64,000 nucleotides of DNA from Trichosphaerium sp. ATCC 40318. Taxonomy: Eukaryota > Protista > Tubulinea. A program made the position numbers and the translations under genes. Within the stretch, counting starts at the first letter, position 1. Every line of letters begins with the position of its first letter. The stretch is taken from contig JALMLS010000062.1 of the NCBI GenBank assembly GCA_038496445.1, positions 248,001 to 312,000 on the forward strand, in the 5' to 3' direction. The notes under the pieces are model-generated. The model had not been told where the DNA came from. It was given only the letters and a program-made list of their open reading frames with translations, and did no database searches. Of this stretch, positions 39,975-47,568 are shown piece after piece.

Positions 39975-41318
39975 ATGGCTGATAGTAACGGCGACGCAGT
40001 AAAACTCGATTCTCTACCTACTGAAGTACTTGCAATGATTTGCGACTACTTTAAAGACAAAGAGCGAGTTATTTCCGCTCAGCTATGCTCTAGAACGGCT
40101 TCAGTTATACACGATATTGTAGGATACATCAATATAACCATTAAAACCATCGAAGACGCCAAAAGAGTTAGTAAATTCCCAGGCGTTCTAAATCGTACCA
40201 TTATACGTGGAAAATGCGGTATTGTCCACCTTAAAGGTGCTAAGCACATTGAGTGGTTACAGGTTATCGATGATGCTGGTTTTAAAGCTATCGCTGGCGT
40301 ACGTTCCTTAACCTTGTACTCTACACCGATAGCATCACATGAAGGCTACCGCGCTCTCTCTGGACTCCATACTTTAGAAGTTCACAATTATTTGCCAAAT
40401 GACGGAATTTTAAAGTATCTCGCAGGCGTTCACACGGTTTGCTTACCAAACGTCAAAGCTACCAGCGATGAAGGTTTATCAGCAATAGCAGGAGTACACA
40501 CGATTGACATACGGGGAGCTAATGGCATAACGGATAAGGGCATAGCTAAACTAGCAGGAGTTCATTCTATATGCATTAACAGTTGTACTGGCGTTACAGA
40601 CAAAGGGATAAAAGCCCTTGCAGGCGTTCATACGATATCTCTTAGAAGTTGCCGCCAGGTAACTGATAGAGGCATTGAATGCTTAAAAGGAGTACATACG
40701 ATTGATCTAGGCACGTCACCTAACATCTCAAGTGAAGGTATTAAGGCGTTGGCTGGTGTACACACGTTAATACTATCTGAATGTCCTGGCATTGATGAAG
40801 GTGTAAGAGCTTTAAAGGGTGTACATACACTTAACCTCAGTTGTTGTCGTATTACAGATTATGCTCTTGAAACACTTTCTGGAGTACATACTTTGAATCT
40901 AAGTGCATCTCTTGTTACTGATGTTGGTTTAAAGCATATTGCAGGTGTTCATTCATTAAATCTGGCCGAAGCACATCATATCTCAGATGAAGGTCTTAAA
41001 CACCTCTCTGGTATACATACTATTGATTTAAGCTGGTGTACTCAGATAACAGATGATGGTTTCTCTCATTTATCAGGTTCTCACAGTGTTACTCTTGTTG
41101 AGACGAATATTGGAGATAGAGGTCTTAAAGCACTTGCAGGTGTTAAGTTTATTGAGCTTATTGAGTGTGAGCATATTACTGATGAAGGAGTAAAGTGTTT
41201 AGTTGGTGTTGAGTATATTAATATTACTGATGCTGAGAATGTGTCATCTAATATAAGGGATGTACTTGTTGGTTCTAATGTTGTAACAAACTTTGGGTTT
41301 GCATTAAGTAGACACTGA
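39975..41318 (+). CDS. Intronless F-box + LRR protein (GVHTLxLSxCxxITD repeats)
   Basis: 447-aa single ORF; LDSLPTEVLAMICDYF followed by about 14 repeats of roughly 22 aa. Confidence 0.9.
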   Translation: MADSNGDAVKLDSLPTEVLAMICDYFKDKERVISAQLCSRTASVIHDIVGYINITIKTIEDAKRVSKFPGVLNRTIIRGKCGIVHLKGAKHIEWLQVIDDAGFKAIAGVRSLTLYSTPIASHEGYRALSGLHTLEVHNYLPNDGILKYLAGVHTVCLPNVKATSDEGLSAIAGVHTIDIRGANGITDKGIAKLAGVHSICINSCTGVTDKGIKALAGVHTISLRSCRQVTDRGIECLKGVHTIDLGTSPNISSEGIKALAGVHTLILSECPGIDEGVRALKGVHTLNLSCCRITDYALETLSGVHTLNLSASLVTDVGLKHIAGVHSLNLAEAHHISDEGLKHLSGIHTIDLSWCTQITDDGFSHLSGSHSVTLVETNIGDRGLKALAGVKFIELIECEHITDEGVKCLVGVEYINITDAENVSSNIRDVLVGSNVVTNFGFALSRH

Positions 41319-41568: not shown

Positions 41569-42543
41569 TTATTCTTCACCTGAAACAATTACAACAACCT
41601 TCCCCTTTGCGTGACCGTCTCCTAAATAATTAAAAGCATCTGATACCTCATCGAATCCAAATGTTTTATCGACAATAGTACTGATACTTCCTGCTTCAAT
41701 AGCAGACAGAATCTCGTCCATTCCTTTGTTTTCTTCGGCGGCCAATACACCCATCTTTTGGTTAGACACTGCGGATGTCCATGAACCGTAACCCAAAGTC
41801 TTGAATATATTACTCACTTGGCCACCTACCATACAATAGCTCCCTTTGGGAGTCAAACATTTACGGTATCCAGTAAGGTCATGTGCTGCAACAAAGTCAA
41901 CGATCAAATCGTACTTTTTTCCGCTTTTCGTAAAATCTTCATTTTTATAATCAATCACGTGATCAGCACCAATACCTCTCATGAATTCAAATTTGCTTGA
42001 ACTATCAACACCAGTAATATTAGCACCAAAATACTTTGCAAACTGTATAGCAAAAGACCCTGAGCCTCCACCAGCTCCGTTTATAAGAATTCTTTGACCA
42101 GGTGTTATATCGCCATTATACTTCAATGCTTGAAGCGCAACACATGCTGCTTGTGGGATTGCTGCGGCTTCTACGAATGACATGCCTTTAGGTTTAAGTG
42201 TAAGGCACTTTTCTGGTATTGCAGCATACTCAGCAAGACCTCCATGAACAGCCATCGCATCGCCAAAAACTTCGTCGTTTTTTTTAAATTTCGTAACGTT
42301 TTTTCCTACTGCTTCAACTGTTCCGGCAATATCTGACCCCAGAATGGTTCTGCTTGGTTTTGTTAGTCCCCATATACGCACATAAACTGGGTGACCCCTC
42401 AGGAACTCAATATCGGATGAATTAAGCGATACAGCGTGTACTTTTACTAAAACTTCATCTTTCTTGGGTATTGGTTTAGGAACCTGTACGTGGTGTAATA
42501 CATCGTCTGGAGAACCGTAAGAAGTATATTTAACAGCTTTCAT
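41569..42543 (-). CDS. Intronless NAD(P)-dependent MDR-family oxidoreductase (quinone reductase/RTN4IP1-like)
   Basis: 324-aa ORF; VHAVSLN, ILGSDIAGTVEAVG, LINGAGGGSGSFAIQ, GADHVIDY, GHAKGKVV. Confidence 0.93.
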   Translation of the reverse strand: MKAVKYTSYGSPDDVLHHVQVPKPIPKKDEVLVKVHAVSLNSSDIEFLRGHPVYVRIWGLTKPSRTILGSDIAGTVEAVGKNVTKFKKNDEVFGDAMAVHGGLAEYAAIPEKCLTLKPKGMSFVEAAAIPQAACVALQALKYNGDITPGQRILINGAGGGSGSFAIQFAKYFGANITGVDSSSKFEFMRGIGADHVIDYKNEDFTKSGKKYDLIVDFVAAHDLTGYRKCLTPKGSYCMVGGQVSNIFKTLGYGSWTSAVSNQKMGVLAAEENKGMDEILSAIEAGSISTIVDKTFGFDEVSDAFNYLGDGHAKGKVVVIVSGEE

Positions 42544-43118
42544 CGTGAACCGTTAGGTGTTTTTAGTTTTATAATAAACCGACAATCTTGACTGTTCACG
42601 ACCGGACACAAAATTTAGACCGTTCTGAAAAATGTACTGGCCTCGCACATAAAATAAACCCGATGATCTATCAAGGTAGAATATCAATACGACAGAACGT
42701 TTTGTGCGCTGTAAAGCGTGTTTGACCTATTTTTTTTTGCTAAATGCAGATAACTCCACCAGAGTATGAAAGCTATCCTATTAACGCATCTCTATGGAGT
42801 ATTTTGTGCGATGGTAAAAAGTCACATGCTTGGTACTAATCGGGTAGTTGCCTTTTCGAAAAGTTGCCTAGATAAATTACATTATCTTACCTCAGCTGAC
42901 TCAACAAATAAAAAAAAAAGAGAAGCTCGTTACCATCTCAATAGATAGGTAATGTGATGTATGTATAATGAGAAAACGAATTTAGAAGGGAGGACACAAG
43001 GCTGACAAAGAGATGTTATGTTGATTTTAAAAGAAATAAAACGACAACTTAGAATATTTGGGCTGTTAAAACTGATTTATTATGTTACTGTGTCTCTATG
43101 TGAAAGTTGGTTGGAAGT

Positions 43119-46100
43119 CTATGACGATCCACGGTGAAGAGTGTGAATATTCCAGAGCTGTGGGTTGTTTGTCATTGCTCTTGGTCTGCATCCGTTACAG
43201 CAAGCTGTCTTTCTCATACAATAGCATCTGTAACCAAATCCACCGCTGTAAGACAACCAGCTGAGTTGTTGAGTGTAGATAATATCAGAACACTGTGAGT
43301 CTTTTGCAGCGGCAGCAGCACAATCGTTAGCGAAGTGACGGTTATGCCAAGGGTCAACACGCCCTCTGATGAATACTTCCTTCTTACAATCTCTCCATGT
43401 TTCTCCAGGACAATCGTGATGTCTTGGTTTATCTCTTCCAAGGTATTGGTAACCGAAGTGACCGTCACAGAACATGCCGGCTTCCTTCAAGATAAGTGCA
43501 GGTGGATCGAAGGCAGGTGTATCAGATTTTGGTTCCAAGTCGCAGTTTCTGCAGTCGTTCGTCATAGGCCATTTAGGTTGACGTGTAACGTTTTTGTTAA
43601 GGTTAACAGCGTCACAAGATATGCACTCGTCTCCGTGTCTCCATGGGATATCTTGATGTTGTGGAGGGATAACGAATCCAGGGAATAGACGTCCAGATCC
43701 CTTAAACCAACATGTCGAGTGGTAAGCAGGGTCTCCTGCGTGTGTTACTTCTTCTGGGCCGAATGTCTCTGTAGCTCTTCTTGCGCGGACAGTGAAGCAC
43801 ATGTCTACGTTTGCCCATGGTTCTCCAAGATTTATTACGTTGTCTTTGCATATTTGAGGGATAAGGTTGGCTTGGCCGTTGTATCTGTTTGCCTCAAGTA
43901 CTCTAGGTAGGACCATGTATCCTTGGCATGAACCTCTTCTCTCACAAGCTCTTTGACATACGTCAGCATCGTTGTAGATTCTATGACAGTCTAAAAAGAA
44001 CGATTAGAATAAGAACAACAACGTAAGATAAACAAAACACGGCAAAAAAACGAGACCAATAAAAAAAACTAAAAAGAAACACGTGTTTTTTGTTCAAACA
44101 GTTTTCTTGTGTAACCAAAAAACGAAACAGAAAAAAAATCAAAGTATCCACATACCAAATACATCTTGTGGGTCAGGGAAGAAGCAATGATCAATACGAC
44201 TAGATAATAAAGTCAGAACTCGAACGAAAACTGAAAAAAAAAAAAGAGAAAACAAAAAAAAAGCAAGAGAACTTACGTGAATCCACCAGCTGGGTTTGGA
44301 AGACCGTAGATATCTGCTACTTGTCTGTTGACGTAGTTAACATCAAGACAATCTCTGTAACCTCTCCATAGCCATTGAATAACGTAGTCACCAAATGCAG
44401 CACCATTTGGTATTGAAAGTCTTACCATATCAGCATCTTGTGGTCTGTGTGCGTGATGCTCGAACTTGAAGATACCAAGGACGAAGTCAAGCTTGTTGTT
44501 GGTGTATTCGCAGTAATTTCTGACTTCAAGATCGTTCTTGTATCCGAATAATGTAGCGTCATCTGCCCATAGACCGAAAGCTTCTGGTCGTGGAATAAAG
44601 TTTGGAGAAGTTTCAGCGATTGGACCGCTGTAGTATTGCAAGAAAGCATTAAAGCCGGCATCGCGAGCTCTGAATTGTCTGTGGTATACAGGTAGATTCT
44701 GGCAAGCGCTGTTTGGTGCTTCGCTCAAATATGTTTCCATAAGGTCGAAAGATACCTCTCTAAGTCTTGCTTCATCTTCAGCCTTGACAATGACGTAGTA
44801 TGATGGTTGGGTGTGACCAACAGACCATTCGATTTCAAATTGTTGATTTGGACCAACTTGAACGTGAGGAGAAGCTTGTCTTCTTGATGGACATGGAGTT
44901 TGGGTACTAGCAATATCTGCGCTTCTGCCAATTCCGAATTGCCAGTTATGGGCTTGAGTGGTTGGGAAGGAAACCAAAGCGATGAGGAAGAGAGCCAAGA
45001 CGACTGAAGTTGTCATCTTTCCAGAAGAACGCATCGTCAAACCGAGGACAGCGAGAGCCATGAACAAGAAAGATGTTGTCGATTTTGTGGCAGGTGAAGT
45101 TGCGCCTCTTGCAGCAATAACAGTTCTACCTGGGTTGGCAGGAGGAAGAGTATTTGCGAGACATTTGCACATACGAAGTCTGAAAAAAAAAAGTAAGTTC
45201 AAGAAACTTGAGTAAGAAAAAAAAAAACAAAAAGTAGTTTTGACTTTGAGTGTTGACATACCCGATTCTTGTGTCACCGCTTCTGGAGTCACAAGTAACA
45301 CGTCCAGTATTACGTCCTTGGTCGGCACATCTTGTGTCGTCATAGTAGCAAAGACCATCAGTACCCATTGTAGCTCCTTTGTTGCTACAACCACTGACGT
45401 AAGGAAGTTTGCAAGGGAAACTTTGTGGAATAATAAGCTGTTCAATTCTTGTTGGGCTGTTAACGCGCTCCATATGGACAACATCACATTGGAGATTCTC
45501 TTCGGCACATCTATCAGTACAAGATTGACCTCTCTAAGAAGAAACATTAGTTTCAGACCAAAAATAAAGACAAAAAAAGAAGGCTTACCTTGGATTGAAA
45601 CCATGTTTGACGTGGTTTACGTGAACTTGACTCTCCGAGTTTGAGTGGACCTGCGCCACCATTTGGCCAATAAAAGGCGCCAGTATTGGCGTCACCTTGC
45701 TTAATTAAGCAATGAAACGTTACTGGACCTGTTCCCTTTGGAGGAGCCTTCCATTTCCATGTTGACTTGAGAGGCTTGAGTTCAGCGCTCTGGTGTGTAA
45801 TACTCTGGCGACACTCGTGTGTATTAGGCCAAGGTAATTGAAAGAATGCTAAACAAAAAGAAGTCAACACGTGAACGAAAAGTACAAAAAAAAAAAAACA
45901 CAAAGTCTGAAAATAAAGTGTTACAATTAACAGAATTGAATCACATTCATCAACCGGAAAAACTAAAAGAAGCGAAAAAAAAACCCAAATAAATGATCTT
46001 TTTCAACGTACGGTTTGCTTCATCAGGTAGAAGCCATTCACCAACTCTGTTACCAGCCTCATCTTGAGCGTATATGAGAATACCGCGGTATTTGAAGGCA

Positions 46101-46423
46101 TAGTTGTTGACACGAATGCTAATATCCATAACTTTTTCTGGGATGTATTCGTCCTCTTTAGCATCTTCTGCACCAGCCCATGTGCTGTATGCACCGCTGC
46201 GAACGACCTTTGTAGCCCAAGACATACGAGGTTCTGGTCTTTTGTTACAGGTAAGTCTGTCGACTCTACCATTTCTGAATACTCTGTAATCAGCAGGAGG
46301 GCATCCCCAATCAGGAGAAGCAGCATCGCAGTTAGGTACAGAAGCTGTTGGTCTTGAAGCACCGTAAACGGTCGCAATAAGAGCGATCAAGTAAAGCGAG
46401 GCTAAGAAAAAAGCACCACGCAT
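43119..46423 (-). CDS. Secreted Reeler-domain protein fused via an internal signal peptide to a His-brace-like domain and Cys-rich tail
   Basis: Reeler motifs YRGILIYAQD..VGEW and SITH..WKWKAPPKGTGPVTF; Cys-rich segment; two hydrophobic stretches; TQA|HNW...WSVGH...YVIQWLWRGYRDCLDV. Five GT-AG introns. Confidence 0.8.
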
Positions 46424-47568
46424 TGCTACAAGAGATTAGAAAGGTGAAAAACGGTGGCGGTGTAATTAATCTTCCTTTCAACCCACGTGATATTTTCTGT
46501 GTAGATAAAAAAGAGAATACGATTTTGGGTTTCGACAGACGATAAGAAGTATAAAAAAGGATTGAGAAAAACTGCGTACTTGTGTTAGACTTGTTGCCAC
46601 TGGTGTATTTGGTTTAGGAAACTGATAAAATAGTGTAATTTCTAGCTAGCGAGGTGTGAATCAATATTGCGCAACCCAGAGAACTAGCGTTAATGGGTTT
46701 GTTAACTTTGCTAGGCTCATTATTAATGTTTTCTGTAATACTCAAACCATATACCATTTCGCTAGTGATAAAAGTGTACCCATAATTGCCGTAGCTAGCG
46801 ATAAGAAACCGTACGCAAGTTGTATACCACGGGCTACAGTTATGTTTTTCCCTGTGACACGAGTACAGAAAAATGCGGTGAAACAAAGTGGGTTGTGGTT
46901 TGGTCAATTTTTTGCGGTTTTGTCCCCTTTACAGAGCTGTCATGTCACTCCACTAGCGGAAACAGACAAACGCCAATGCTAGCAAGATCCGCTAGTATAA
47001 GCGCTTTCTTTGTGTACGTAGTGAAGGTCTCGCTATATTCAATCACTTGGCGCGGTTTTGGCAACTGCCGCTCAACCTAGTTCGAACACTATTAAACCTC
47101 GTGGTACACACTTTTATCACCAACCGAAAAAAAAACGTCGTAGCGTTCTACGCTCAATTTCTCGGGATGCTACTCCCGATGACATTTTTTGTACGAACCC
47201 CAAAACCTCCGGTAATGGTTGTAAAAGTTAACTGCCTTTTCAAGCCATACAAAACCCCTGCCATCGTTTTGTGGCCACCTTTCTTAGCGATTTATTCCAT
47301 CTTTCTTTCGAAACCTATGGTAACCTCAAAGGTACCTAAGCTTAACAGCTGAACGCAGTATTTACTTACACAAAGATAAAACAGACAAAGCCATGCACCA
47401 TTTCACAAAAAAAGTACAAATGGTCTGGTATCCACAAAAAATCCAGAAAATACGAAAAATAGTTTATTATCACGTGATATAACATACAAATAGTACTTAC
47501 TGCAAGTTCTCCACTTTTTAGTTTATTTTTTCCGTTACACCCTTTAAAGAAAAGTACGGAGGATGTTC

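Follow-up and report, generated by a model that had tools for sequence, protein, structure and literature searches.

How could a histidine that lies in the middle of a long polypeptide become the free first residue of a copper-binding protein? The question is raised by a gene on the minus strand of a 64,000-nucleotide stretch of Trichosphaerium sp. ATCC 40318 (contig JALMLS010000062.1, positions 248,001 to 312,000; the whole stretch is called the window here, and coordinates count from its first letter). The gene encodes a Reeler-like half and, behind an internal segment with the features of a signal peptide, a domain resembling lytic polysaccharide monooxygenases (LPMOs). A free N-terminal histidine, as part of a copper histidine brace, defines LPMOs and their copper-binding relatives, and in all histidine-brace families that we know of the domain sits first in the protein. 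We propose that the gene probably encodes a precursor which is processed by signal peptidase and yields a new LPMO-like protein.

A sequence-only reading of the window had quoted one frame leading through a short basic loop and a hydrophobic segment into a histidine at 44950-44948. This frame, the loop and the segment are indeed present there, and the exon borders around them (an acceptor after 45180 and a donor at 44276) were confirmed by RNA contigs. The exon in question, the fourth coding exon, begins with the last residues of a Cys-rich module (LRMCKC), continues as a Ser/Thr/Pro linker and reads without a stop through ...ATKSTTSFLFMALAVLGLT-MRSSGK-MTTSVVLALFLIALVSFPTTQA/HNWQF..., where the slash marks the predicted cut. 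Its parts are:

44277..45179, minus strand: exon 4, comprising the linker, hydrophobic segment H1, basic loop, internal signal peptide and LPMO-like domain in one open frame (RNA joints 45179 to 45262 and 44199 to 44277).
45035..45070, minus strand: hydrophobic segment H1, FLFMALAVLGLT, residues 352-363, 12 residues, similar to a stop-transfer sequence or a glycosylphosphatidylinositol (GPI) signal and preceded by small residues and a Ser/Thr spacer.
45017..45034, minus strand: basic loop MRSSGK, residues 364-369, predicted to be cytosolic.
44951..45016, minus strand: internal signal peptide MTTSVVLALFLIALVSFPTTQA, residues 370-391, with a 13-residue h-region, Pro at -5, Thr at -3 and Ala at -1.
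44948..44950, minus strand: His392, His1 of the LPMO-like domain and predicted new N-terminus, invariant in 90 sequences.
44277..44950, minus strand: LPMO-like beta-sandwich domain of 225 residues, defined by an AlphaFold2 model, structural alignment and 406 relatives.

At this locus, a stop-transfer segment is followed by a short loop of positive charge and by an internal signal sequence that conforms to the -3/-1 rule, and the predicted cut site, TQA/H, is internal (residue 391/392). The frame is continuous through the histidine domain, as had been read from the letters; the TAA after GGFT, in turn, is not its end, the donor ac/gtaagt being used there and the exon being spliced to exons 5 and 6.

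Is this junction a peculiarity of one locus? An exhaustive HMMER search of 1.84 billion cluster representatives, each standing for a cluster of proteins at least 50% identical, returned 406 relatives at E <= 0.001 and 200 at E <= 1e-10, the best with 39% identity. Most matches sit at about residue 330-400 of proteins of 900-1500 residues, and they begin already inside the signal peptide of the query. Among the 150 best relatives, HNW stands behind a hydrophobic stretch in 134. In 92 of these it is preceded by more than 100 residues and lies at about residue 250-900; another 33 begin with Met and reach the His by position 46 at the latest, and 9 are ambiguous. Position -1 is occupied in 132 of the 134 by Ala (108), Gly (14) or Ser (10), and position -3 by Ala (58), Val (36), Thr (12), Ser (12), Cys (9) or Gly (7), so that the signal-peptidase rule holds at -3 in every case. 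The sequence-only reading had named conservation of A/HNW in homologues as a check; HNW lies behind a -3/-1 site in 134 of 150 relatives, and the junction at the locus is no mere chance feature. Among the relatives with a named source, those of Flabellula baltica and Rhizamoeba saxonica (Amoebozoa) stand closest to the window; the others come from an acantharian and from a culture of the Marine Microbial Eukaryote Transcriptome Sequencing Project (MMETSP) labelled Euplotes. All remaining relatives stem from metatranscriptomes and metagenomes. A word-indexed protein search with a 247-residue piece gave no match, since the relatives exceed its length window and share too few exact words; with residues 380-640 of relative P0001 it found four proteins only.

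The surroundings of the site are conserved as well. Two hydrophobic segments occur in the 80 residues before the His in 75 of the 92 internal forms, with loops between them of median 5 residues and a mean net charge of +1.24, and with an uncharged run of median 17 residues. The 33 stand-alone relatives have the same AxA/HNW junction directly behind an N-terminal signal peptide, so that the internal signal peptide suspected from the letters has both a conserved internal form and a conventional counterpart. One of the 33, P0014 (a cluster of 60 that includes an acantharian transcriptome, on transcript-sized contigs of about 1.6 kb), was checked for an upstream in-frame stop: a TAA precedes its ATG in an AT-rich leader, and AKA/HNW follows an ordinary N-terminal signal peptide. 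In such stand-alone forms, therefore, the usual rule makes the His the first residue of the mature protein.

A helical hairpin, too, would consist of two hydrophobic segments with a short basic loop between them, and the cut itself is a prediction from sequence. An uncleaved membrane protein with two ectodomains might thus be imagined, in which H1 and the second segment (H2) form a transmembrane hairpin, His392 never becomes N-terminal, and the domain serves as a binding module without a brace; the modest structural scores given below would suit this view. We consider it improbable. The full signal-peptidase motif stands at the junction in all 134 relatives and is identical to the junction of the 33 forms with an N-terminal signal peptide, and a plain hairpin would give no reason for small residues at -1 and -3 before an invariant His-Asn-Trp. 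An artefactual fusion of two transcripts was also considered and rejected, as a single genomic exon contains the fused frame, which is found again in 92 divergent clusters.

What, then, is the domain that the predicted cut would release? In an alignment (A1) of 90 sequences of the domain family, His1, N2, W3, R9, H46, Y74 and G197 are invariant, and the columns conserved to at least 90% include G45, W195, Y198, D200 and D203. H46 is the second His, in EIEWSVGH at 44815-44813; Y198 is the Tyr of WLWRGYRDCLDV at 44359-44357 and sits in W-x-G-Y-x-D-C. AlphaFold2 with this alignment gave a model with a predicted local distance difference test (pLDDT) score of 91.7 and a predicted template modelling (pTM) score of 0.89; on the single sequence the pLDDT was 36.6 and the model unusable. 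In an exhaustive structural alignment (VIA-align) against 48,161 chains, the X325 protein LaX325 came first (Z 7.9, root mean square deviation (rmsd) 3.5 A over 127 residues) and the AA15 LPMO TdAA15A second (Z 7.6, rmsd 2.7 A over 118 residues, 19% identity, model 1-209 against chain 1-195), with structures of AA9, AA10, AA11, AA13 and AA16 at Z 5.2-6.6. Of the 50 best rows, about half belong to LPMO or LPMO-like chains, and in every such row residue 1 of the model is aligned with the first mature residue of the chain (chain residue 1, or His28, His29 or His35). A re-examination of the 1,000 best chains of Foldseek gave the same picture, LPMO chains with His1 in register. TdAA15A uses His1, His91 and Tyr184 in a chain of 195 residues (PMC5823890), and Y198 of the model and this Tyr184 lie at an equal offset from the end of the alignment. 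Independent language-model and shape searches of the ESM Atlas both led to eukaryotic clusters with LPMO_10 or BIM1-like domains.

Other results weigh against a brace-bearing domain. All structural Z values are below 8, a range common for beta-sandwiches, and pilins, S-layer domains and chaperones are mixed into the match lists. Foldseek alone, run against the PDB, ranks the N-domains of GH123 first, with template modelling (TM) scores of 0.2-0.3; a GH123 identity was not adopted, as the exhaustive aligner ranks LPMO-type chains first and the GH123 domain lacks the His1 register. No Pfam family (LPMO_10, BIM1-like or other) matched any of the 90 members at E up to 1, phmmer with the domain found nothing among PDB sequences, and the 90-member profile produced there a single chance match (E 3.2). 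A precursor that is cleaved but carries no copper brace, its second half being a generic Ig-like sandwich (for instance an adhesin or a carbohydrate binder) whose N-terminal His has another role, would fit the best Z of 7.9, the mixed company in the lists and the missing sequence link to any AA family. It is nevertheless an unlikely reading: two invariant His and a conserved Tyr occupy LPMO-like positions, LPMO chains form about half of the top rows and always have His1 in register, and both kinds of Atlas search reach LPMO_10 or BIM1-like clusters. The case for a histidine brace comes from the fold, the register of residue 1, the two invariant His and the Tyr at the offset of TdAA15A Tyr184 taken together. 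Judged by its sequence, the domain is an undescribed family. The likeness to AA10 and AA15 suggested from the letters holds for the fold, the model being aligned from His1 onwards and His1, H46 and Y198 being conserved in the family, and does not extend to sequence membership, as no LPMO_10 match was obtained in the 90 members; 'LPMO-like' is the right label, with AA10/AA15 being only the nearest fold.

Is the second half made as part of one long chain? RNA contigs from four public runs (X1, X2, X3 and X8) were mapped onto 42900-46700. Their joints give six coding exons in one frame and a model of 920 residues, of which the His is residue 392; the ATG lies at 46423 and the stop codon at 43121-43119, and each of the six exons, translated in the phase set by the preceding ones, contains zero stops. 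The introns, with GT..AG joints on the minus strand, are 46426-46579, 45849-46011, 45534-45588, 45180-45261, 44200-44276 and 43991-44155. Besides exon 4, the transcript comprises:

46580..46611 (5' end approximate), minus strand: 5' untranslated exon; the joint 46425 to 46580 (CT..AC) was seen in X1 and X3, and an adapter abuts 46611 in X1.
46012..46425, minus strand: exon 1, with the ATG, the first signal peptide MRGAFFLASLYLIALIATVYG (46423-46361) and the first half of the Reeler-like domain (RNA joints, jackhmmer).
45589..45848, minus strand: exon 2, with the second half of the Reeler-like domain, containing KAPPKGTGPVTFHCLIKQGDANTGAFYWPN (joints 45848 to 46012 and 45533 to 45589).
45262..45533, minus strand: exon 3, the Cys-rich module (GQSC..C..C...CKLP..C...CYY..C...C; RNA joints).
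44156..44199, minus strand: exon 5, with the conserved (T)RIDHCFFPDPQDVF motif behind the LPMO-like domain (joints 44199 to 44277 and 43990 to 44156 in all four runs).
43119..43990, minus strand: exon 6, coding for some 290 Cys-rich residues at the C-terminus that do not end in a hydrophobic tail; the transcript has its 3' end near 43061.

The intron at 46426-46579 (154 nucleotides) falls within the 5' untranslated region, with its 3' end two bases ahead of the ATG. Sequencing adapters adjoin the transcript at about 46611 and about 43061-43063, which are probably its ends.

A spliced contig of 696 nucleotides (record 9 of X2) starts in exon 2, continues across exon 3, H1, the loop and the internal signal peptide, and stops at 44964, 14 nucleotides short of the His codon; it differs by 8 letters in the part from exon 2 to the internal signal peptide and may stem from an allele or a paralogue. 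In none of the four runs does one single contig cover both halves, and contig depth over exons 2 to early exon 4 is 3-5 times higher than over the His-domain part in X1, X2 and X8. In X3 the imbalance is reversed, the first half being lower (window 44297-45820), and contig depth is in any case unsuited to ranking parts of one gene; cross-mapping of paralogues or isoforms could be the cause.

Separate expression of the second half, from the ATG at 45016 by an internal promoter, trans-splicing or internal initiation, with the read-through frame being incidental, would be in line with the greater depth on the first half and with the fact that Met370, encoded by this ATG, opens the internal signal peptide at the locus. 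The same internal start had been offered as an alternative in the sequence-only reading. A maximum-likelihood tree of the domain might also be taken in its favour: fused and stand-alone forms are interspersed, with 16 state changes, at least 6 of them forced by well-supported branches, which suggests that the halves can work as separate genes. Fusion or fission has therefore been repeated, or some of the 'stand-alone' entries are truncated at the 5' end. Nevertheless, we regard separate expression as very unlikely. A Met between the end of H1 and position -10 occurs in 30 of the 92 internal forms, as against 26% expected from composition; the Met at 45016 is therefore not a conserved start, and an internal ATG as a general route to the second half was rejected on this count. 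The other 62 relatives have no Met to start from, so that their second half can be made only as part of a long chain. Frames across the junction stay open here and in 92 divergent relatives at about 30% identity, which argues for selection on a continuous frame. The spliced contig described above spans exon 2 through the internal signal peptide, and no transcript starts or loose ends were found among those listed at 45017-45060, although contigs cannot reveal transcript starts.

Further RNA observations concern the locus itself. A second sequence variant, with 3-nucleotide insertions near 45651 and 45661 and many substitutions, covers 45590-46019, and a variant joint 45848 to 46019 carries seven other letters; this variant probably comes from an allele or a paralogue. 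In X2, a contig of depth 19.4 contains two odd joints, 44386 to 45481 and 45527 to 45821, with the non-canonical ends GT..CA and AC..GT, and is probably chimeric or derived from a paralogue. No paralogue of the gene was found within the 64-kb window. Sequence nearly identical to 43100-46500 occurs in sequencing runs under seven organism labels from eight studies; the source organism may often accompany other organisms or contaminate their samples, or the labels may denote close relatives.

If both halves belong to one precursor, what is the first of them? Iterative local searches (jackhmmer) with the separate exons against the 150 best relatives placed exon 1 in 69, exon 2 in 75 and exon 3 in 74 of the 80 long fused relatives (those in which at least 250 residues precede the His), every match lying on the upstream side of it. 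Pfam Reeler (PF02014) matches the upstream halves of 29 of 92 relatives (best E 4e-11), and these regions are homologous to exons 1-2 of the window by jackhmmer; the Reeler module seen in the letters is thus supported through the relatives. Searched one by one against Pfam, the window exons gave no match; exons 1 and 2 have no Reeler match because an intron splits the domain. The Cys-rich module after it (45262-45533) has four Cys columns conserved to at least 90%. In relatives, this module shows sub-threshold matches to the last 85 or so positions of Pfam Glyco_transf_18 (GnT-V), scoring 13-23 bits where the cut-off is 28.

Single relatives carry other modules at this end. P0004, a truncated protein in which the searches detected no Reeler region, contains at residues 13-39 a plastocyanin/azurin type-1 copper motif (FYCTPHPAM), with 23.9 bits against a cut-off of 21.2. 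DOMON-like stretches below the Pfam cut-off occur at residues 339-436 of P0050 and 512-558 of P0071, with or after a Reeler domain, and the upstream half of P0038 adds a thrombospondin repeat. Plastocyanin-type and DOMON modules serve electron transfer elsewhere, and their presence in these relatives may hint at such a role for the first half.

Behind the LPMO-like domain, exons 5 and 6 together add about 300 Cys-rich residues, and the protein ends in ...NIHTLHRGSS, with no hydrophobic tail. The exon 6 region matches 115 of the 150 relatives in jackhmmer searches and lies downstream of the His in all 105 that carry HNW; the R(I/V)DHC motif of exon 5 occurs in 93 of 134 relatives. The motif ...GYRCYCMRKTACCNGC of the C-terminal region (43122-43988) recurs in relatives such as P0002 and P0010. 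A weak language-model lead from the Atlas to PAN/apple modules, with a score of 0.91 but 135-141 of 256 features in common, was not relied on.

How might such a precursor mature? The first signal peptide would lead the Reeler-like domain and the Cys-rich module into the lumen of the endoplasmic reticulum, where H1 (residues 352-363) would stop the transfer, and the six-residue basic loop would stay in the cytosol in accordance with the positive-inside rule. The second hydrophobic segment (residues 370-391) would then restart translocation with its C-terminus in the lumen, acting as an internal signal peptide, and signal peptidase would cut after T-Q-A391. The Reeler half would be left tethered to the membrane through the H1/H2 hairpin, or by a GPI anchor if H1 is a GPI signal, whereas the second half would be released in soluble form, with His392 as its free N-terminus and a Cys-rich tail without anchor. 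His1, His46 and probably Tyr198 could form the copper histidine brace. The copper domain may serve in oxidative attack on polysaccharide (of prey walls, or of the organism's own cyst or scale material) or in copper handling of the X325 kind.

We also considered whether the two halves might constitute a built-in redox pair, in which the tethered upstream module, a Reeler in most relatives, gives electrons to the released copper domain or positions substrate for it. This is a doubtful proposal at present; if it were true, the single precursor would ensure equal amounts of both partners and their delivery to the same membrane patch or phagosome, and it would represent a new mode of maturation and partnering for a histidine-brace oxidase across Amoebozoa, Rhizaria and other protists.

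Genome mining for such enzymes searches the starts of genes for a signal peptide with a His behind it. If the proposed processing is correct, a large protist family (406 clusters) has been missed both by this rule and by Pfam, and there would be a second way to make the brace, namely the cleavage of a precursor behind a signal peptide that lies within the chain. With it, a new variant of the LPMO-like fold is available for characterisation, with regard to its substrate, its copper site and its role in feeding or copper uptake of amoebae and marine protists. Furthermore, it would be a rare cellular case of polyprotein processing by signal peptidase, with the Reeler half as an obligate partner whose function is potentially testable.

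In the neighbourhood of the gene, an intronless open reading frame of 324 residues resembling zinc-type alcohol dehydrogenases and quinone oxidoreductases (ADH_N, ADH_zinc_N) lies directly downstream at 41569-42543 on the minus strand; lying among intron-bearing neighbours, it may have been acquired from bacteria. A leucine-rich-repeat open reading frame of 447 residues (LRR_6) follows at 39975-41318 on the plus strand.

Which known systems does the gene resemble? With the AA15 LPMO TdAA15A of Thermobia domestica (PDB 5msz) the domain shares the beta-sandwich and a second His. In both, a signal peptide (here internal, and its removal predicted) precedes His1, and some 11 residues separate a Tyr from the end of the aligned core. 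It differs in that no sequence homology is detectable, that the second His stands at 46 instead of 91, and that the N-terminal motif HNW..R is specific to the protist family; the AA15 domains described are N-terminal, whereas here the domain stands in mid-protein behind an internal signal peptide.

The X325 proteins (LaX325, PDB 6ibh; Bim1/Cbi1 type) are the best structural match, and the shape search of the Atlas also finds a BIM1-like cluster. They are likewise LPMO-like eukaryotic proteins outside CAZy that are linked to the cell surface. In X325 the third copper ligand is an Asp; in the protist domain it may be an Asp likewise, or a Tyr. The copper domain of X325 itself carries the C-terminal GPI anchor, whereas here the segment resembling an anchor is part of the Reeler half upstream, and a soluble Cys-rich region closes the protein behind the His domain. 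Again unlike X325, the 90 members have no BIM1-like match in Pfam.

For the upstream half the nearest comparison is ferric-chelate reductase 1 (FRRS1/SDR2), which combines Reeler, DOMON and cytochrome b561 domains; cellobiose dehydrogenase is an electron donor of LPMOs. The upstream half here is Reeler-like as well, and a few relatives have DOMON-like or plastocyanin-type modules instead of it or added to it, whereas no cytochrome b561 or haem motif was found at the locus. For the Reeler half, participation in redox chemistry is no more than a lead.

In its processing the precursor recalls viral polyproteins. Host signal peptidase cuts at internal signal sequences in the structural regions of flaviviruses and hepaciviruses and in the glycoprotein precursors of bunyaviruses, and the arrangement there is the same: after a segment that stops transfer come a short loop in the cytosol and an internal signal with a -3/-1 site, and a luminal cut, here predicted, parts two ectodomains. 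We found no literature linking the histidine brace to polyprotein processing at internal signal peptides, and no published description of such a design in the literature on LPMOs, the histidine brace, internal signal peptides, Reeler, amoebae and haptophytes. The LPMO-like fold, the Reeler domain and processing by signal peptidase as in viral polyproteins are each known in kind; the family itself is new, as is an internal signal peptide predicted to create the N-terminal His of the brace. Unlike the viral polyproteins, this is a cellular gene family of free-living protists, and the predicted cut would not only part two ectodomains but also create a catalytic or metal-binding N-terminal residue.

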